Shown one piece after another: positions 3,410 to 25,149 of a stretch of DNA of 64,000 bases (the first letter of the stretch is position 1; every line of letters begins with the position of its first letter). Under the pieces are notes generated by a model. It made no database searches. It was not told the DNA's origin and saw only the letters and a list, made by a program, of their open reading frames with translations. A program made the position numbers and the translations under genes. The stretch comes from Mytilus californianus (Eukaryota). The stretch covers positions 55,366,001 to 55,430,000 of the forward strand of contig NW_026262668.1 of assembly GCF_021869535.1 (NCBI RefSeq), in the 5' to 3' direction.

Positions 3410-4378
3410 ACAAAGAAATAAAATTGAGAATGGAAATGGGAAATGTGTCAAAGAGACAACAACCCGTATCGAAGAGCAGAAAACAGCCGAAGGCCACCAA
3501 TGGGTCTTCAACACAGCGAGAAAATCCCGTTCCCGGAGAATGGCTTCAGCTGGCCCCTAAACAAAAATGTATACTAGTTCAGTGAACATGGACGTCATAC
3601 TATACTCCAAAACATATAAAAAAACTAAAATTAAAAAAACATACAAGACTAACAAAGGCCAGAGGCTCCTGACTTGGGACAGGCGCAAAAATGCGGCGGG
3701 GTTAAACATGTTTTGTGAGATCTAAACCCTCCCCCTTTTACCTCCAGCCAATGTAGAATAAATAAACAATTACGCAGCAATACGCATAGTAAAACTCAGT
3801 TTTAAAGAAGTCCGCGTCCGATGTCAGAATAGGTAACAAAAGAAACTAAGCAAAATGACAATGATACATAAATTAACAAAGGACTAGCAGTGTCTGACAT
3901 GCCAGCTCCAGACCTCAATTAAACTGATTGAAAGATTATGTCTTATCATATGAAAAGCAAGCACAATCCTTCTCGTTAGGGGTTTAGTATCATACCATCA
4001 TAAAATATATGAGAAGAACATAACCCGTATCATGCCAACAACTGGTTTTAGAATAAATGTGTTTATTTTCGATGCAAAGACCCTATGAGTGAATCAATAT
4101 TAATACCAAAATATGCCATCTTTAATGACCTGACAGCAGTATCGTAATTATATCCCTTCTGAATAAGTCTGTTTAAAGGTTTGGTAAGCTTTTGAGGTGA
4201 ATGGCGACATTTTTGTGCTTTGTATAGAATATTACCATAAAAGATTGCATGTGAAATACCTGCACGTATAAGATGTCTGCATGTTGATTTATATTTACGA
4301 ATGATAGATATAAGAAGATGTGGTATGAGTGCCAATGAGACAACTCTCTATCCAAGTCACAATTTATAAAAAAATAAA
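3410..4378. mobile_element. Composite bivalve dispersed repeat with a Penelope-like C-terminal ORF relic
   Basis: Starts with the AATAAAATTGAGAATGGAAATGGG head. Minus ORF 4063-4335 (GISHAIFYGNILYKAQKC) resembles the C-terminus of bivalve PLE-type RT elements (from recall). Ends in a truncated GATGTGGTATGAGTGCCAATGAGACAACTC repeat. Confidence 0.55.
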
Positions 4379-4379
4379 C

Positions 4380-4630
4380 ACTGCAAGGTGTGCGGTGCCA
4401 AGAAGTCTCAGTTTGTTGCTACAACCGGTGTAGGGTTCATGAACAAACTAATCAACCAATTATCCATGGAAATGCATCTGCCCAGCACAAGGATACAACC
4501 GCACGCAACTCCATCTGTGATAAAGCTATATTAGCCTCGCTCAACACCATTCCCAACCCTATCACACGCGAACGCATGGCCCGCAGCATCGTCGGACCCA
4601 TCATCGGTACCAAAGCTCGATTTGGTCCAA
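4380..4630 (+). pseudogene. Polinton small-ORF remnants: CxxC-KS-F (DUF5679-like) fused to a deleted PLA2X-like ORF
   Basis: HCKVCGAKKSQFV; GFMNKLINQLSMEMHLP joined out of frame to AQHKDTTARNSICDKA...IVGPIIGTKARFG. The central catalytic segment expected in this family is absent. Confidence 0.55.
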
Positions 4631-6600: not shown

Positions 6601-9600
6601 TTACTCCTCAATTTTATAATGTCCGTGAGCAAAGGTGTTAATTCCATCGGGGAGAATGTGTTGCTTGGTATCTTTGGCCGAGAGAGCGACTTTGTTAATT
6701 TCCTGGGTGTAGATCTGATGGCGGTAACTTCGGAAAATATTCATCGGTCGGTATATTTCCTGCTGGGTGTCAAGATATCTCTTATAGTTGTCAAAGGTAA
6801 TATGCTGCTTGATTACAGCCTTTGTAACTCCCTTTGCTTTAGTGGTAGTGTCTCCCATCATCCATTTTGTACGCATATAATTTTGGTCGAAGTCCCACGA
6901 AGCCAGTCATACTCTTACCACCACATTCGTCCTTAAACATTCCAATTATCTTCTTGTTGACGCCGGATGGAATTCCTGAAGGGTGATCGGCTGGATAGTT
7001 CGAGGTATCGAATTTTTCCTGAACGTGGGGGGGTAATATCTTTGTAAAAATCCTCGGTCTGAATTTCAAAGGCTATCTGTATCGGTAAACAACAGCCGGG
7101 CGTTATCACCATACATCTCCTGTATGAAACCGTAATGGAATTTATACATCAGGAGCTTTGAGATGTCTAGGATACATGCTCCCAAGTAGACTGGCTTGTC
7201 AAATTTCAGCTTGGTTCTTTTCATGTGAACGGCTGCCAGATTTTCATTGAATATGACCCGGCGATCAACATTGGGCTTGAACACTAGTTTTAGGGCTTGT
7301 TTTTCACTGTTCACCAGTCGAACATCAACCCTCTTTCGAATATTCTACATCGTTTTTCCAAACACTGACTTATTCATGAGTTTGTAAAAATCCTTCTCAG
7401 CATCGCTTGTAGCCTGAGCTCTGAGTTCGGTATTTAGGTCAATATACGGTTTGAGCCATGGGGATTGTTCAAATCTGATGATCCGATGAACCTTTTTCAA
7501 GATCATTTCCTGGGAGATATAGTATTGTAGGTTCTGAAGATGAAGGATATACTTTTCACGTTTGTCCAGATGAGGTACCAATTTACGAACTCCGTCGATT
7601 TCCATGGCTTCCGGCGTGAGAGGGTAGTCGTTATGGCTATCGTGAAGGCGTTGAGGATATTCCATATCACTTTCTAATAGCGCCGAATATTTATGATCTG
7701 CTGAATATTCCATATCACTTTCTAATACCGCCGAATATTTATGATCTGCTGGATATTTTAACATCTCATCAATCTCTTCTGGATCTGCCCATTCAAACCC
7801 TCCTGTGGGAAGGGGTTGTGCTATAGCTCACCCATATAAATTGTTTTCATCTAGGTAGGTCATAAACTTGGTTGGCTGCGATGGATCGTAATTGCTCATA
7901 TATGGATTATTAGCCTTTCCGAGTCGGTGAGATATCATGGCCGCACCTCCCCCAGTCGCATTTTCGAACATCAACAGCATATCTGGATCGGCCAGAAGTT
8001 CCAGTCGGAACCTGGTGTATTTTTGCATCGCTTCGTAAGATAGCCATGGGGATGTGAAATAGTGTGCGGGATCGAGCTTGTGCGTTTTCATACAGTTATC
8101 CCTGAAATTCTCGAAAATATCTTCTAGTAAGGCTACATCACTTTCCAAGTAAAGATTGTGATAATCTCGCATCGACCTGCAACTAAATTCCTTGAACACC
8201 AGCTGGGGTTGGGCGTAATCTTCATTGGAAATATGTTCACCGCTGAGTTTATTGAAAAACGCCTCCTTAGGTGGTAGCTCTGTTTCCTCCAGCTTGGTGG
8301 GGCTATCTACATAATCGTATGGATATACTCCCTTCCTAATCATCAGTTCGGTGTGATCACCAAAACACTTTTGCGTTGCCTTGAATTTATCCTTGGTCAG
8401 ATTCTTTGCCAAGTCTTCGATGGAGGAGAGTAGGAATCGCATGGAGTCAATAAACCTCATCTCGATATCTCCAACCTTCTTGGAGAAGCTGATATATTTT
8501 TCATTGGTGTTGGGGATACAGTTAATCTTTACTTCCCCGAATCCTAATTCCCTCACGAATAAATGGGCATCATACCCACTCAAATTATGAAATACGATGG
8601 GGACAAATTTGGGTAGCTGAAACGCTAAATTACACTCATTGTGTGCTGCACCTTGATATTTACCAGTAAGATGATTGTGATCCCGAACCTTATCCCCACC
8701 ATGCAAAGTGTTACCACAAATGTGACAGAGTGTGATCGCCGCAAAATTCTCATTATCTTCATCCGTCATTACCATCGCAATTTTGGTTTCATAGGTTTTG
8801 GCAATTTCTCCGATTTCCTTTTTCATACACTCCACGAATTTCTTGGCTGCATCTTCTCCACAGTAAACGACTGAATCTTTGTCACCGTGGACATATTTTA
8901 TGCGGTGGCAGAATCCAGATGGCTGGTGCAGCTGATATGCCTTGGTGTAGGCTCGCGATGGATCTGACTGGCAGGTGTCCATCTTTTCCGTAAAGCACTC
9001 AAAATCTGCATAGATTATGAATGGAACCCTCATCTGGCGTTGGTGGTTTTGGAAACTGATGAAGGTTCCTTCTTCCGGCATCTCGATTCTGACCGGCTTT
9101 TTCTGGCTACAATATTCCATATGCTCGTCTAGGATGTCCTGTCTGGTGAAGTGACACAGACACTTGCGGCAGAAGAATGCTTCTCCATTATGACTTGTCA
9201 CCTGAGACGACAAAAGGCTTAATAAGCTCTTGATCCAGCAGTAATGTTGTTTGTTATCTCTGGTCAAAAACAGGAGATCTACGTGTTGTGTGCCAGTATT
9301 CTTGGAAATTCTCAAAGGGTATAGTTTGATATCTTCTTCCTCATCTTCTCCTTTCTTCACACCATCAAAGCCAAAAACGTTGATATTTAAGTCTGAATTT
9401 TGCCGCTCAAATTTATCAATGGCCTTAAGCGATACCGCGAAATCAATCCCATCAAAATTAAGATCATTTTCCCACTTCTTATATTGGTTCAGTCGGTAGG
9501 CGTGATTTTTATCCACCTCATTTTCATGTAGGGCTGACAGCAACGCCTACTGGAAGCAACGATTATCTTCATTCCTAACATTTACGATTGCCTTCTTTTT

Positions 9601-16930: not shown

Positions 16931-18262
16931 CCTTTTTAAAGGTAAATTACATGTAAAATATCTATATTTTAATCATATAAAAATATTCAATATGTAAAAA
17001 AAGCCATTCTATTTATTACATATATGTTTCTGTTTAATGTACCGATTGCCAGACAGTGATTGATTCCTGGTAAACAGGATGTTGTGGATGTCGGATTTTG
17101 AGCAAGTCAAGTCATTATAGCACTAAGTAGTGTTTAGACTATGTCAATATGAAGGTATAATTTTCATGTTGGATGTTTATTCTTTTTTTTAATTTAATAT
17201 CTTATTCTTATATATTTCATATCAAATATCGATACTGATAAATATTACCTGAACAGGCAAAAACTGATTATCCAAAATGTAATTTTTTTCAGTGCACATC
17301 CAACACTATGTATCAAAATATGATCATGAATTAATAATTGTTGATCGGGTCTTGAATACCCATACTTTAACTTCATCATTATCACGTAAAATGGAGTCTA
17401 ATTAATCAATGCTGTTTTTCATAAAAATCTTGAGCGTAATACACATTAAAAACTGAGCAGCGTTTGTCGAATTCAAAATATGGAAATTTACGTAAATTAA
17501 GTAATTACGATAGACGAAACTGCGTATGTTTACATCCCAAATGAAAACAAAAAACAGCCAACCGCTGTGATAAGCACTGCACGATTAGAATTATACCGAT
17601 TGGTGCCAGTGGTTTTAATTTTCGTATCCAATATATTTCTACCGAATTTTTTATCTCAAAACCAACTACCCGAATCAAAACGAAGAAGCTGATGAGTATC
17701 GATAAAATTGTTTAGGGCGGAAATAATAACTGTGAATTCATTTGTGAAGTCAGTTCAAAGTCTAGTGGCCATTTTCGACATGCCGTTATACTGTTAAATT
17801 TGAAAATTTGAAAACAAAAATACATCCGCCAACAGTTCGACATTGTAATATTTTCACAAACATTATAGAAAAGGTATATCGACTCAACATAAAAATGTGA
17901 TTTTTATATAGTTTACAAACATAAATCTTAATCATGTCATGTTCAGTTTAATTTTTTCATCATTTTCCGTGTCTTCCTTAATGGTTACCAAAGAGCTATT
18001 GCATTCAAGTTTTTTCAGTACCATGATAATTTAGGATAGTTCAAATCTTACTAGTTAATAGTGCAACATTGTGACATATAGTACAGAATGTCCGTCAAAA
18101 TGAATAAATTGCCATTGCTAAACTGAACATCGTGCGTCACGTCATTAGAGTGTTTAACAATTAAGGATTGGATTTCATATATCAAGTTGTGTTATACCTG
18201 TGTATTTTGGCAAAATTCAATATCATTGATTAACAAAACTGATTAAAACATATCAAGTATAC

Positions 18263-18550
18263 CTGCAACAACCAAGTCGACACTTTTATTCATCCAAACG
18301 ATTCCTTCCAAAGTAGATAGTCTAATTTTGCATGTATAGTTTCCCATGTCTTCAATCGTGCAATAATTCAGATTGATGGTCGATGTGTTGTCAGTGAAAA
18401 TCCCATCAAGATAACGAATGATTCTTCCTTGAAATGTATGGGTCCATCTGTCAAAGCTGTGCTCTAACCTCCCGACAAAAGAGCATATCAAGGTTATGTT
18501 TGATGATTCATTGCACACCTCTTCATCCTTTAATTCCATTACAGGTTGTT
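18263..18550 (-). CDS. Immunoglobulin-domain exon (phase 1-1, 288 nt)
   Basis: TTTTAG acceptor and G|GTATAC donor; ITLIC...W...DMGNYTC Ig signature. Confidence 0.85.
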
Positions 18551-18589
18551 CTAAAAGATATGTCTTTGTTAAAAAAAATAATATAAGTT

Positions 18590-18665
18590 TATGTTTGATG
18601 ATTCATTGCACACCTCTATATCCTTAGTTCAACGACAGGTTTAGATATGTCTTTGTTAAAAAATT
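18590..18665 (-). pseudogene. Partial tandem duplicate of the 5' end of the Ig exon
   Basis: Near-copy of 18496-18575 (GTTTGATGATTCATTGCACACCTCT...GATATGTCTTTGTTAAAAAA); contains a TAG and lacks the AG acceptor. Confidence 0.75.
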
Positions 18666-18753
18666 TCAAAAATATGTTTGCATTCGAAAGATACCTAATT
18701 CGATACGATAACGTAAAGTCATAGACGTTAGTTCAAACAAATAATTATCATTC

Positions 18754-18934
18754 TAGATTTTACATATAGAGTAACCATACATTGTCTCGAAATATGAATT
18801 TTATTTGTACAAGGCTTAGAAACAGACAGAAAGAGAGGCTTTGCCGAGCATTTCCATCCTGTTTTCAGCCGAGTACAAATAAAATTTATATTTCGAGACA
18901 ATGTACGGTTATTCTTTATATACTGCAAATCCTA
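18754..18934. repeat. Inverted repeat, ~73-bp arms with a ~33-bp spacer (MITE-like hairpin)
   Basis: CATTGTCTCGAAATATGAATTTTATTTGTAC versus GTACAAATAAAATTTATATTTCGAGACAATG. Confidence 0.8.
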
Positions 18935-19767
18935 CAACTGTTCCATATGAAATATTTAGGGTAAAAACCATCATTTTTTAATTTTGAGCGAACGTCGTAA
19001 AAATTCCGCGAACCTGTACCTTTTAATGACGTCATAAATAAAACTCTACGGAAACTCATTGTCAACGTCATACACAAGGCGATATACGATCAGTGACTGT
19101 ATATCACAAATGATTATACGGCCAATGCAATTTGACTGCTCAAATAGTACAGCTGCAGTATATACATCATTATGAATGCAACGTTATATTGTATGGAATC
19201 AGCTCAACAAATTTGACAAATATATAATTCAACCACTTGTTTGAAAAGTCACAATCTGTAAGTTTTTAGGGTTTTAATTATTTCCCTGAAAAAACGAATA
19301 TGAGTGTTTTTGATAACAATAATCATCCTTTTCAACACAGGTGCAAGAGGTATGAATATCAACGTTACAATTACCTCCCCTCTTTTTGAATTTACATTGG
19401 TTTCATTTATTTCACATATTTCTATGTATGATCTACAGTTAAAGAAAGGGTATAATGGTTTACTTTTATAAATTGTAACTTGGATGGAGAGTTGTCTCAT
19501 TGGCACTCATACCACATCTTCCTATATCTATTAAGTGCTGTCTTTTTGTGTTTGCTGGTCAATGGGTTTTCATCCACAGTGGTAAATAATTTTTCAACAT
19601 CGCGAAAAATAACGAATTACTGATATATCAATGCTTGCAAAATGACATGTTTGTTCTGATAAACTTGCAAAAATCCAGGCTTTTCATATTTTTCAATCAA
19701 ATGTATCTCAGTGCTCAGCTCTTCATAAAATTGCATATCACGGCTTTGTGACGTCAAATGCGTTAAC

Positions 19768-21239
19768 CCGGTGTCCTATAGCCATTTTCCCCCATGCTAA
19801 TATTTTCCTTAGGTAAGAACTAGATCGATCCAGTCCCCCCTGAAAAATTGGCATGATCCATCTTTTCCCCCGCAGCGTGATGGGGGAAACCAGGATCAAG
19901 CCTATTCTTCCCCCTTTTAACACGAAAAGCTCATTTTTCCCTTGTAGTAACGTCGGCGACGTCAGTAAGGAATTAATCATACATTAAAGGATAGCAACCT
20001 TCTTTTAAGTAGTTTAGCGTTACCAAACCATCATCGTGGACACATAAACAGACCAGTGAACATATTGAGAGACTGGTGGACCCATAGACAGACTAGTGGG
20101 CACACACACGGACTGGTGGGTGTGTAGTAAGGCTGCATTGGGACATGTTAACAGACTGGTGGATCCATAGACAGACTTGTAGACATGTCGACATACAAGT
20201 GGTAACATAGCTAGACCGGTGGGTGAACATGTTGACTGACTGGTGGACACATAGACGGACTGGTGAACATGTACAGAGACACACAGATGGTGGACATGTA
20301 TACAGACTTGTAGACATGTCGTCAGAATAGTGGACACATCGCTTGAACTGTGGGTGAACATGTTGACTGACTGGTGGACACGTAGACAGATTGGTGAACA
20401 TATAGAGAGACTTGCGGAGACACACAGTCTGGTGGACATATACACAGATTGGTGGACATGTTAACAGACTACTGGACATGGAGACGTACTAATGGACATT
20501 TAGACAGACGAGTGGCCATGCAGAAATGGACTCAGATTTATGGATATGTGATGAAATCACCATACTATCTAGCATTCACACGCTAGCGGACATAGACGAC
20601 TGCACAAAACAAACATAAAGTTCAATGTTTAATGTTAATGTAGGGTAACTCCTTTAATAAGTTCTATACCGATGTCCATAAGTTCTATACCGTTTGTCAT
20701 GATGTTAAATATATGAATGGATGGCAATTTTATTTAACAATATATCAATGGCTCATAATATCTTAATGAATATTAGATAAATTTATTCCTGCGGTGAAAG
20801 TGATAGTTTTCAGGTAAGCCATACGAATAAATCGAATTTTTGGACAGTCATATATGAATCGGGAAATTTTTCGAATGCAAACAGAACCCTAGTAACAAGA
20901 TATAGGTGCCCCACCCCATTCCCCGACCCCAGACCTTTCTAGTGACATGCGTGTCAACAAAACGAACATAATTTGTACCTAACATTTCTTCTATGCAATC
21001 TAAGCCGAAAAACAGATTATTTTAGCATTACAGGAATCAATCATTTCTTAAGAAAATACGAAAAATATATGCAACAAATGGCCATAATTTGATGTATATA
21101 TATAGTGAAATCTATATTGTGGGGGAAATATGAGCATAGGGGAAAAGTGGCTATATGTATACGTATTGTCAACTTTCCGCGGGGAAAGAATGGCAATGAT
21201 CCAAATTTCCCCGGAAGGAAAATGGCTATATAACACCGG
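19768..21239. mobile_element. Non-autonomous TIR element containing a minisatellite
   Basis: TIR CCGGTGT..TATAGCCATTTTCC at both ends; no TSD identified. Confidence 0.6.
20035..20520. repeat. Degenerate ~20-bp minisatellite (GACTGGTGGACACATAGACA-like)
   Basis: Tandem units are visible and explain the spurious ORFs 20020-20445 and 20093-20479. Confidence 0.8.
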
Positions 21240-21381
21240 CCTTAATAAATAACTTTGACGTCATAATGAACTAACTGACTTTGATAAGTTTGACCACAAC
21301 TTATCAATTCATCTTCCGGTTTGCTTGTGAAACAAAGAAAAACACTTATTTTCTATCATGCAAAATACACAAATACAATCT

Positions 21382-23012
21382 CACAGTGTAGATACTATTC
21401 TGTACGCTATCCGGAAGTCGCGATTTTTGAAGCGAGAACTTTTTGGATCACATTTTAAATTTGATGGATATACTGAATTAAACGGTAAGTTGATCATCTG
21501 TACATTACTTAATGATTAATTCAGCTGACATCGATATTCTCAAATGGTTTAGAATTAAATTCAGCACATTCATTATTCGTATCTTTGCCTTAATCAAGAG
21601 ATTTTCAAGTGCATCACTAAGATAAATCAGTCGGTGAACCTAAAAACAATCTTTTTACCCTCTTAGTGTACAAATTAACGTAAAAACCAGACGTAATCAA
21701 CTAAATGAAGTATATTTCAAGTGGTGGTAAAAGTTTCAACCAGATCTTTGAAGCCAGAAATAAGAAAATTACACTTGTTTGAATTTCTCACTGTACGATC
21801 AGTCTCGTTTGTATATTTTGAAACTGTATGATCAGTCTTTATTTCACTGTATTCTAGTGGTGATTTCAAAGTTATTTACGATACATTAGAAGGTGGCATT
21901 TTTCTAAATAACACAAATATATTTCAATAAATTCACATCCTGAAAACTTATGAAACATGTTTTAGCTTGATGGGGTGTACTCGACTTACTACATTAAGTA
22001 TAAGGATGTTTAAATGTTGCTAAAATGAGAGGAAGGTTTGTTGTATATATAAGTTTCAGAAATGTCCTCCGTTATACTTAAAATTGTACAAACACACAGA
22101 TTTAATTGTTATATAAAAAAGCATGTATTTACACACATTCGAGGCCGTACTGTAGCCTATAATTGATCACAGTTCATTCACTTTGTTTTGGATGTAGAGC
22201 TGTCTCTTTGACACTCAATTGTACATCACTTTGTAAAGCGGGGGTTTATAGTGATAATGAAGTCCGTCTTTCCGTTGGACCGGTACAATATGTTTCGTCG
22301 GTTTTGTAAGTGCATCTCCTCATAAACCACTTAATATACATTGTGGGTTCCAGCCATTTTTAAATGGTGAGGGGGTTCAATCCAGGAGAAAAAAATCATC
22401 AGAAATATATTTGTATTGTCTGATGAAAGAAATTACATGTTATAGTTCCCTGGACAGTTCATAATATCACATAGACACGTATATACCTTCAAATTGCCGT
22501 TGTTTCTTTTTCAAAATCACGACTGGTCATACAGTCAAAAAATCTGAAATCGCTTCTAGAATACAGTCAGTTCTAGACTGATCGTACAGTAATTTATTTT
22601 GGGATCCTCAAGGAAAACATATTTTTTTATGGGAAATACGAATATTCTACTTAAATACGAAAAGAATATTGAAACAGTATATATTTAACTGTAAACTGAT
22701 GCAAATATTTGCATTAAAAGATTATTTGCTTTGTACTACGAGAGCAAAATTGTCCATCGATTTCACTTTTTTCTATCAAGTTGGTGTGATGCACACGTAT
22801 ATATTATATTCTTATGCATGTTTTTTGTTACAGTTACTCATATTTATGATGCTATACATACCTTAAAGATGTTCAAAGCACTTTATAGATATAGGAGTAA
22901 ACAAATGATGAGAAAAGTCACCGTAGGCAAAACCGTCCTGTTAGCCAGTCGGAAATCATCGCTTCGAAAATCGCGACTTCCAGATAGCGTACAGAATAGT
23001 ATCTACACTGTG
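21382..23012. mobile_element. Non-autonomous Transib/RAG-like DNA transposon (CACAGTG termini, 5-bp TSD)
   Basis: 54-bp TIRs with 2 mismatches (21382-21435 and 22959-23012); AATCT at 21377-21381 and 23013-23017; no transposase ORF inside. Confidence 0.7.
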
Positions 23013-23251
23013 AATCTCAGACTCATAAATCGATTATCAGATTTTTATCATATTTATATTGTAAAATACCAATATGCAGACATCTTGATAATCGGTACTT
23101 ATTTCATGTATCTTTCTTATCTTTCTTATCATTTTTAATTGATATCACTATCTTCAGTAGAAAGTAATTTCCTGCAATAATTTCATGCAAGCTTATTATT
23201 TTTTGTTGCTTAATTAATAGCAGCAGCCTTGAAGAAATCTATGCACAAAAA

Positions 23252-23818
23252 TCACTTTCTAACAAACATTTGGCGGGCCCAAGTTTCTAGACTGGGAAGT
23301 AAAACTACTGCAAGCAACGTTCTTACTAATGTGCCGGATGTTATACATATACATTCTAGTCTTAAATCGGAATGGCAGTTAAAAATGATGCCCTGTGAAG
23401 GAATATTACAATGCTCTGTATATGTGAGAGATCCATTGAAGCAAGTCTTCGAGGGATCTGTAGATGACTTGTTGCTGTATGCGACTATCCTACATAGCCT
23501 TTTTTCAGTGGTAGTCCAAATTTTCCACCCTTCATCCAGATCAAGCAACGTTCCAGAATCCATCCATTGACTTTTTGTTTATTTGTTATCATCCGAATAT
23601 GCATGAAATATTTGATAATATAATTCCTATTTTGTCCCATCCATCAAATCTTCGAGAAGGGGAGGTAAATGTTCCCTTGTAAGGAAGCTTTTACATAATT
23701 TTCCGTCCGTATTATCAATGAGTGAGCATTTCATTGTTTCTGTATATGGTGTGGGAAACCACGTTAAGTGACTCGTTCTAATAAATGAAGTGATTTCAAA
23801 ACGTTTTCAAACAATTTT
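23252..23818 (-). pseudogene. Pseudogenised Cys-rich exon downstream of an Ig-like exon
   Basis: CACAG acceptor; one +1 frameshift (ACG-TTTT-GAA) and two in-frame stops in an otherwise continuous ~185-codon frame ending GTLVRTLLAVVLLPSLETWARQMFVRK*. Confidence 0.5.
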
Positions 23819-24119
23819 CTGTGACGTTATGGGTACCTTAATATGTCATGACTTTTTTTAGTTGCATTGTTTGAAATCTTACATCGGCCAATTGGTTCAT
23901 CTCTATATAAGAAAGAAATAAGTTTTGTATAGTACAACAACAAAAAAATGCATACCATGACGAAATTGTCCTTATTTCCAAATTACCACAAGTCTTTTCC
24001 ACCAATTATGTGAATCATGGCTGGATAAAACTGACAATAATGAACTATTGTGGAAGGTTGTGGCTAGGAAAATAACATGTTTTAATGACAGCGATGTGTG
24101 AAATTTTCATGCAACATAC

Positions 24120-24470
24120 CTTCGTATGTAGTTGTTTCTACATAGACAGTAGTTGTCTCTACATAGACACTGGCGTTTTCGTTATTAGTTCCATGAAGAC
24201 AGGTCCAATTTCCACTCGTATAGTTCGAAATATTCATTCGTATTGCAAGTAAAGTTTCATTTCTCGATAGTGTTTGATTAATCGTTAAATTTTCTTGCAA
24301 AGGCAAACAGTAAGATGACGGGATTGGTGGTAAACAAAAAGCCTTTTCTTTATGTGATGGATTATAAAATGAAATTCTGTAGTATAATTTCTCAACAGTA
24401 CAATTCAGCAGAATGAAGTCATCTTGAACCTTAGTCGTTAAAAAAACACGACCAGAACATTCCAGGAAAT
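24120..24470 (-). CDS. Ig-like domain exon (phase 1-1, 351 nt)
   Basis: TTTTTCAG acceptor and G|GTATGT donor; LLNCTV...FCLPPIPSSYC...GNWTCLHGTN, with several N-glycosylation sequons. Confidence 0.75.
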
Positions 24471-25149
24471 CTGAAAAATGGAAATAAACCGTCAGTACGA
24501 TACACGAAGACACATAAATTAAACAGTAATAATAATTTGATATTTGCTCAAATATGACTACTTGCTTTAATTTTCCATCACAATTCGTGTTGGTTGACAC
24601 GTGTTCGATATTTCAAGAACCGAAACTGCACGGTTTTGATGTAATCAGTCGCAAGGTATCATTTGTTCGTTGATTGCTATTTAGTTTTATATTCTTAATT
24701 CTTATCCGAATTTTTCAAAGAAGATATCACCTGCTAAGAGGGTACAGGTTTGAATTGTAACGTAAACACTTGCTCGCTCATAGGCGATATTCCTATTTAT
24801 GCGAAAATTACGCACGTTTATTTGTACACCATTATTTGTATCGTAAAATTGCCCAATGTATGATAAATGATTAGAAAACTACTAAAGGGACCTCCTGTAC
24901 AGCTTTTTACACAATGTTTTCTACCATACCTTTTTTTTCTGGGTGTTTACATTGAAAACAATACTTACAAAACATTGAATAAAGCAGGAAAACTAGTAAT
25001 TCCATATTAATTATACAAATTAATCACATTTATTCTAAAATGTGGTTATTGATATTATCGAGCTAATAATGGATTTAAATAGTTATAGGAAATGGAAATG
25101 ATTATGGGTATTCCGCAGGAAGACAAAATAAGTAGTGGAGCGAGATTCA

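Follow-up and report, generated by a model that had tools for sequence, protein, structure and literature searches.

A 1631-bp element in the genome of the mussel Mytilus californianus (assembly GCF_021869535.1, contig NW_026262668.1) is most probably an internal-deletion derivative of a large Mytilus cut-and-paste transposon that encodes a P-element-like transposase; we put the probability of this reading at roughly 0.8. The element occupies positions 21382-23012 (plus strand) of the stretch analysed here, a 64,000-nucleotide window that covers forward-strand positions 55,366,001 to 55,430,000 of the contig. Its ends begin with CACAGTG, the heptamer of the V(D)J recombination signal sequence (RSS), and it is flanked by a 5-bp target-site duplication (TSD). 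From these features the initial annotation had read it as a non-autonomous transposon belonging to an unrecognised RAG/Transib family. The first half of that reading is borne out, as the element is a gene-less cut-and-paste transposon. The second half is not, as the long form with matching terminal inverted repeats (TIRs) encodes a transposase of another kind, a P-element-like enzyme with a fused YqaJ nuclease domain. The RSS-like ends and the 5-bp footprint are therefore a look-alike and do not tie the element to the beginnings of V(D)J recombination.

A gene-less element and its short family

On re-measurement the window element proved to be as first described: 1631 bp long and bounded by 54-bp TIRs with two mismatches, with CACAGTG at both outer ends, AATCT on either flank and no transposase. 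The left TSD copy (21377-21381) is followed by the left TIR (54 nt, 21382-21435, plus strand), which begins CACAGTG and is identical, apart from 1 mismatch, to the ends of a 19.2-kb copy discussed below. The right TIR (54 nt, 22959-23012, minus strand) finishes CACTGTG, pairs with the left TIR and is followed by the right TSD copy, the same five bases at 23013-23017. The inverted arms can also be drawn at 55 nt with 96% complementarity (21381-21435 and 22959-23013), where the extra pair is a chance match of flanking bases added to the 54-nt arms and their two mismatches. The 26-nt end of the element occurs at two sites only in the window, where shuffled sequences predict 0. No gene was found inside the 1631-bp copy, in which the longest overlapping open reading frames (ORFs) are of 65 aa (internal) and 135 aa (exiting the right end); the longest in a near-consensus copy of the same family are of 86-87 aa.

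Two arms make up the element. Positions 21382-22392 (plus strand) match the zinc-finger-gene end of the long element described below (its positions 21-1027; 95.9% identity over 1019 columns), and positions 22391-23012 (plus strand) match the transposase-gene end (its positions 18640-19260; 97.6% identity over 622 columns). The arms meet at a deletion junction (22391-22392) that has a 1-nt microhomology and no TIR or TSD of its own. Overall the window copy lies ~1.0% (Kimura two-parameter distance, K2P) from the family consensus, and it lacks ~40 bp at family positions 622-662 that other short copies retain.

A search of the 1.65-Gb assembly with the whole element recovered at least 30 full-length, collinear relatives, for which the canonical length is 1671 bp. 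Allowing up to 3 mismatches, the 26-nt end occurs 94 times genome-wide compared to 0 times for the reversed pattern, and 94 TIR ends correspond to ~47 copies. The median K2P distance of copies to the family consensus is 1.06%, suggesting that the burst was recent. The TSD is perfect and locus-specific in 30 of 32 short copies, perfect in all four copies with nested insertions, and perfect in 35 of the 37 copies overall when short, nested-insertion and 19.2-kb copies are taken together. A 1778-bp copy at C88:132646140 (locus L033) has the TSD GATAT. Tabulated over copies as the initial annotation had proposed, the 5-bp TSD is thus a true property of the family. The AT-richness of the TSD, which had been raised as a caveat for the window copy, also holds family-wide: TSD GC content is 0.19 versus 0.36 in the adjoining flanks, so target sites are AT-rich.

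All copies of 2.2-8.5 kb consist of the short backbone plus unrelated insertions. When the terminal 26, 20, 15 or 14 nt were used to search the whole genome, every match outside the 19.2-kb pair came from the short family (with or without a nested insertion) or was an unpaired chance match, and such unpaired matches were no commoner than in the reversed-pattern control. A scan of viral contigs for the element end gave no match. In Logan contigs the element is present at ~25-150x single-copy depth in three differently labelled organisms, suggesting that the family is common to related mussels. It does appear to be unrecognised, as had been proposed: the open literature searched (Repbase and Dfam lay outside this scope) holds no description of it.

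The short copies also differ at their deletion junction. The junction varies among copies (family positions 621-662; ~22392 in the window, where the copy is 40 bp shorter), and one copy (L047:1064-2226) carries 1.16 kb of unrelated filler at the junction, while long copies keep the whole interior. Such variation is consistent with gap repair that was aborted repeatedly. A 5.3-kb insertion nested in a further copy of the family contains a 406-aa tyrosine-recombinase ORF (L035:5688-6908, minus strand; Pfam Phage_integrase, E 4.9e-7), probably of Crypton or DIRS type.

A long parent element with a P-like transposase

Contig C110 of the assembly carries a pair of the same ends 19,240 bp apart (the 19.2-kb copy), 54/54 complementary and flanked by TGAAT/TGAAT. 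The short family equals positions 21-1060 plus 18632-19260 of this long element (1040 + 629 bp), with a 1-nt microhomology at the join, and where the interior of the long element borders the short-family arms there is neither a TIR nor a TSD. Collinear arms, shared ends and the lack of a TIR or TSD at the junction together indicate that the short family is an internal-deletion derivative of the long form. A marine-metagenome contig with a different flank reads from the end 108 bp beyond the junction into the interior, and the Mytilus edulis assembly GCA_905397895.1 contains a collinear copy of 13,958 bp with the same ends and the TSD ATACA/ATACA; the long form is therefore itself a transposed unit. 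We had considered the 19.2-kb pair as a short copy with a nested insertion, and rejected this since the metagenome contig crosses the junction from another flank.

The interior of the long element contains a C2H2 zinc-finger ORF and, on the opposite strand, a run of open exons for a transposase of roughly 1350-1580 aa. These exons are collinear over their whole length with P0041, a 1583-aa protein of Batillaria attramentaria. This exact transposase has one copy in the assembly, together with ~60 exon-level matches to relatives at 30-56% identity. One decayed relative (33% identity, two stop codons) lies at C88:55361191-55362036, ~4 kb ahead of the window start. The 19.2-kb copy also contains a 620-bp inverted repeat pair (long-element positions 3767-4386 and 8269-8869) made up of tandem sub-repeats. 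These bracket ~3.9 kb missing from the M. edulis copy, and a nested long-ended element accounts for most of the size difference.

The same pair of genes occurs between similar ends in other genomes. The Batillaria element is 11,225 bp long, with ~780-bp inverted ends that start CACAGTGGCGATACTA and are 99% complementary over 595 nt, and a TSD of TTGTT; the transposase and C2H2 gene lie directly within the inverted ends. Two further elements with the same two genes were found in European Nucleotide Archive (ENA) assemblies: L052 (11,548 bp, ends CACTGGG, TSD GATGT) and L054 (13,238 bp, ends CACGGTT, TSD ATTCA). CAC ends, 5-bp TSDs and this gene pair are common to all five elements, which represent four families, and the lineage has so far been met in bivalves, a gastropod and marine assemblies.

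The protein family of the transposase is unannotated and large, with at least 1199 representative proteins at E <= 0.001. Pfam detects a YqaJ nuclease domain in family members and, in 10 of 62, TNP-like_RNaseH_N (PF21787, the N-terminal half of the P-type RNase H) just above cut-off. Sequence and profile searches of the PDB with the transposase exons, those of Mytilus being searched singly, returned no match. An AlphaFold2 (AF2) model of P0041 residues 760-1500, built on a 62-sequence alignment (mean predicted local distance difference test score, pLDDT, 81.8), was compared with all 48,161 PDB representatives. The Drosophila P element transposase (6p5a, chain residues 241-569) matched the model with a Z score of 23.7 and a root-mean-square deviation (rmsd) of 3.6 Å over 292 residues, compared to Z scores of 7.8 for RAG1, 7.6 for BbRAGL, 7.2 for the hAT transposase Hermes and 6.9 for HzTransib. 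Foldseek also matched the P element transposase (E 1.3e-4), and re-alignment of the Foldseek matches was concordant. The aligned stretch of 6p5a covers the RNase H strands, the insertion domain and the helix with the catalytic E. Judged on this model, the enzyme is P-like, and its likeness to RAG1 and Transib is only what all insertion-domain RNase H transposases share.

Conserved residues in the family include D863 (within FDGQW), D1269-x-x-H1272 and E1439, and D-x-x-H belongs to the P-superfamily signature (PMC8230255), in which [C/D]-x-x-H follows the second catalytic D. The spacing from D863 to D-x-x-H is far longer than in P, and the first carboxylate lies upstream of the modelled region, with D306 and E732 (P0041 numbering) as candidates. 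A C2H2-like finger is visible by eye in the first transposase exon. Ahead of YqaJ, residues 210-330 of P0041 (Mytilus exon L045:6073-7149, minus strand) contain an invariant D-G-K motif and several invariant glycines. This region could be the missing first RNase H strand, in which case YqaJ would be inserted inside the catalytic domain.

From these data we propose the following origin for the window element. The parent is a transposon of ~14 kb, extended by nested insertions to 19.2 kb in the copy on C110, with two convergent genes for a C2H2 zinc-finger protein and a multi-exon transposase of roughly 1350 aa. The latter would consist, in order, of an N-terminal finger, a conserved region, a YqaJ/lambda-exonuclease-type domain, a P-type RNase H-like DDE domain with an insertion domain, and a conserved C-terminal part. 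The parent transposase may bind the shared ends and excise short copies in trans, and these would reinsert through a 5-bp staggered cut with a preference for AT-rich sites; the YqaJ domain may process DNA ends or aid repair. Recent amplification of a single master copy, or of a few, would have given rise to the ~47 short copies. The window copy landed inside an older repeat, in what is very probably an intron of an immunoglobulin (Ig)-superfamily gene, leaving the coding sequence visibly unaffected.

Several points weigh against this interpretation. The assembly has only one long copy with these ends, and the reads yielded no orthologous site that lacks the window insertion, the region being too repetitive. 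Since the model begins after strand beta1, the first catalytic carboxylate was not located within it. A search of seven full-length members with Pfam gave no match to a THAP domain, and the TSD is 5 bp here versus 8 bp for P elements. It should also be noted that the exons of the Mytilus transposase were read singly, which makes it a putative intact gene at most, and that the link from transposase to ends would rest on co-location in five elements of four families.

Alternative readings and resemblance to known systems

Instead of driving the element, the two genes could be passengers, with an unrelated P-like element nested in, and then carried along by, an ancestral short element whose true transposase is elsewhere or lost. 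Several nested repeats do lie within the long Mytilus copies, short copies hold insertions at many sites (the tyrosine-recombinase element among them), and a ~70-nt inverted repeat motif is present on both sides of the transposase gene in the 19.2-kb copy. However, this motif recurs within the element (at least four occurrences) and is also present elsewhere in the genome, suggesting that it is a common small repeat. Furthermore, no TSD or TIR marks the point where the interior meets the short-family arms, and in Batillaria, L052 and L054 the gene pair is bounded directly by CAC ends and 5-bp TSDs. As the pair occurs with CAC ends in five elements, we consider the passenger explanation unlikely.

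Marginally less probable still is that the window element is a non-autonomous Transib- or RAG-like member, moved by a Transib or RAG1L/RAG2L transposase that escaped the searches. CAC ends with a 5-bp TSD are published hallmarks of Transib and RAGL elements (PMC1131882, PMC7204232), and the CAC(AGTG) ends and strict 5-bp TSD of this family match them. The searches also leave some room for such an enzyme: a six-frame genome search with Pfam RAG1 returned only a chance match (E 2.7) with no gene nearby, but it used PF12940 alone, a weak first-look step that gave no signal in any control genome and thus does not show absence, and no search with a Transib protein was made. Against this, the elements with identical ends encode a P-like, not a Transib-like, transposase (Z 23.7 to 6p5a versus 6.9-7.8 for HzTransib, RAG1 and BbRAGL), and neither HzTransib nor RAG1 fits that enzyme better than hAT Hermes does. 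The initial annotation had suggested looking for TIR pairs that enclose RAG1L/RAG2L or Transib ORFs. None were found; the long pairs enclose the P-like transposase and the C2H2 gene, and copies with full or partial end matches enclose no other gene content.

The ends and target sites likewise depart from the RAG/Transib pattern. Beyond CAC, the ends differ from the protostome RAGL TIR consensus CACTWMCAAACKTYKBB (PMC7204232). When the ends were read directly, no ACAAAAACC-like nonamer block was found 12 or 23 bp from the heptamer, in agreement with a caveat of the initial annotation. Element positions 31-39 read CGGAAGTCG, and the sole A/T run, ATTTTTGAA, is found 35 bp into the element; the heptamer strand carries its T-rich version, and the A-rich form is on the opposite strand. 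Transib and RAG favour GC-rich targets (PMC1131882), whereas TSDs here have a GC content about half that of their flanks (0.19 vs 0.36). A survey of bivalve DDE transposons lists one Transib element in all (PMC10294476).

Compared to Transib as a whole, two features agree (the 5-bp TSD and the CAC end with a CACAGTG/CACAATG-like heptamer) and three do not. There is no A-rich nonamer-like block ~23 (or 12) bp past the heptamer, targets are AT-rich rather than GC-rich, and the enzyme is not Transib-like, with a Z score for HzTransib in the hAT range. In addition, the autonomous form here is 11-14 kb with two genes, while Transib is 3-4 kb with one gene of roughly 700 aa. The Drosophila Transib pair Nozomi/Kodama (bioRxiv 10.64898/2026.08.26.747230) does offer a parallel in its mode of amplification, with one master and many copies of one precise internal-deletion derivative that has microhomology at its breakpoint. 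RAGL/ProtoRAG elements (bivalves, nemerteans, deuterostomes; PMC7204232) share the CAC ends, the 5-bp TSD, presence in bivalves and, with three of the four families here, two convergent genes. They differ in that the genes between the ends are RAG1L and RAG2L rather than a P-like transposase and a C2H2 protein; CAC alone is shared with their consensus, and the Z scores for BbRAGL and RAG1 are 7.6 and 7.8.

The internal-deletion derivative of a P-like transposon thus remains our preferred reading, and the closest known relatives of its enzyme are in the P superfamily (Drosophila P, THAP9, Pdre2). The likeness lies in the fold of the catalytic region (Z 23.7, rmsd 3.6 Å, 292 residues), in a D-x-x-H and a conserved E in the expected order, and in the Pfam TNP-like_RNaseH_N match just above cut-off. 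Members of the P superfamily make TSDs of 7-8 bp (8 bp for P elements), and P transposase has an N-terminal THAP domain. Unlike these, all families examined here have 5-bp TSDs and ends that begin CAC. Sequence identity is 13%, a YqaJ nuclease domain is fused to the transposase, a second gene encodes a C2H2 zinc-finger protein, the elements are 11-14 kb long and no THAP domain was detected.

The YqaJ domain invites one further comparison. ISL2EU/Spy (PHIS) elements have a YqaJ-type nuclease and are the only such eukaryotic DNA transposons in the searchable literature. There, however, YqaJ has its own ORF next to that of a PIF/Harbinger-type transposase and the TSD is 0-2 bp, whereas here it is a domain of the P-like transposase and the TSD is 5 bp. 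No report combining YqaJ with a P element transposase was found in the open literature, again with Repbase and Dfam outside the scope. We therefore suggest, tentatively and with somewhat less than even confidence, that these elements form an undescribed deep lineage of eukaryotic cut-and-paste transposons, defined by a P-type DDE domain with a fused YqaJ domain, RSS-like CAC(AGTG) ends and 5-bp TSDs.

Host site and wider meaning

The window copy is inserted in an unrelated high-copy host repeat. The left part of this repeat lies at 21257-21376 (matches run from ~21257 to 21381, with 817 first-look candidates) and the right part at 23018-23200 (depth at 23000-23199 is ~100x single-copy); contigs of the repeat reach hundreds of times single-copy depth. 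Contig joints from ~21380 to ~23025 and from 21376 to 23028 represent paralogous copies of the host repeat.

Two exons flank the site, both on the minus strand. The downstream exon (18243-18539) is Ig I-set/Ig_3-like: it has a C..W..Y.C pattern, a Pfam Ig_3 match of E 4.4e-5 that is below the curated cut-off, and I-set/Ig_3 proteins as its nearest Atlas clusters. The upstream exon (24121-24471) is of a mollusc-specific type and only weakly V/Ig-like. Its best indication is a CD47 V-set match of E 0.025; its nearest Atlas clusters are unnamed mollusc proteins, V-set families score 0.90, a word search gave no match, and a single-sequence fold (pLDDT 34.5) was uninformative. Placement of the element between Ig-type exons, as claimed initially, is therefore upheld for the downstream exon and for the shared strand, while the upstream exon is only weakly Ig/V-like.

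Both exon types are repeated across the genome, with at least 70 paralogues apiece. The same arrangement recurs at 13 further loci, each with an upstream-type exon 2.4-14 kb upstream of a same-strand exon of the downstream type, where chance expects far less than 1. Judged by these paralogous pairs, it is very probable that a single gene, from an expanded Ig-superfamily family, contains both exons, which would make the element intronic; the earlier caveat that they might come from different genes thus loses its force. The site is non-coding, as had been noted, and the insertion lies within another repeat and splits no exon. No reads of the RNA run cover either Ig exon, and an Rfam search of 18000-25000 gave no match. 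Around other copies of the family there is no sign of the suggested enrichment near Ig genes: the strict Ig C..W..Y.C pattern occurs 0 times in 298 kb of fetched loci (roughly a third of which are flanks of other copies) and once in the 64-kb window.

A preference of the family for Ig-superfamily genes, either at insertion or through retention, which could model the splitting of a receptor gene, is very improbable: the exons on either side of the element do come from one expanded Ig-superfamily gene family, but the element is an intronic insertion inside a repeat of more than 800 copies, the fetched loci lack the Ig pattern, neither exon has RNA reads, and at least 70 paralogues per exon type make a chance landing unremarkable. 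The proposed echo of a split antigen-receptor gene falls away on the same grounds, as no exon is split and other copies have no Ig association. The Ig neighbourhood is best read as incidental. For immunology the outcome is negative, with no bearing on how antigen-receptor genes were split.

Elsewhere in the window, positions 19451-19531 contain a ~80-bp core (…GGATGGAGAGTTGTCTCATTGGCACTCATACC…) that is present at ~10^5x single-copy depth in DNA contigs of three organisms. RNA reads are rich in the GGATGGAGAGTTGTCTCATTGGCACTCATACC core too, and the sequences joined to it on either side are many and varied; it probably represents the conserved centre of a mussel miniature inverted-repeat transposable element (MITE) or satellite-linked repeat of very high abundance.

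It is routine, also in papers on how V(D)J recombination arose, to take CAC ends with a 5-bp TSD as proof of Transib/RAG ancestry, and here the same signature accompanies a P-like enzyme. Gene-less copies such as the one in the window would be mislabelled from their ends and TSD, and claims of ancestry need the transposase too. If the proposed lineage is real, the two DNA hallmarks by which transposons are connected with RAG and V(D)J recombination would not be exclusive to Transib/RAG; they would either have arisen twice or mark an older link between P-like and RAG-like enzymes. The fused YqaJ nuclease would be an unexamined addition to a DDE transposase. With its young age (~1% divergence), one master-like copy and ~47 deletion derivatives, the Mytilus family offers a tractable system of a large two-gene transposon that would drive its short derivatives.

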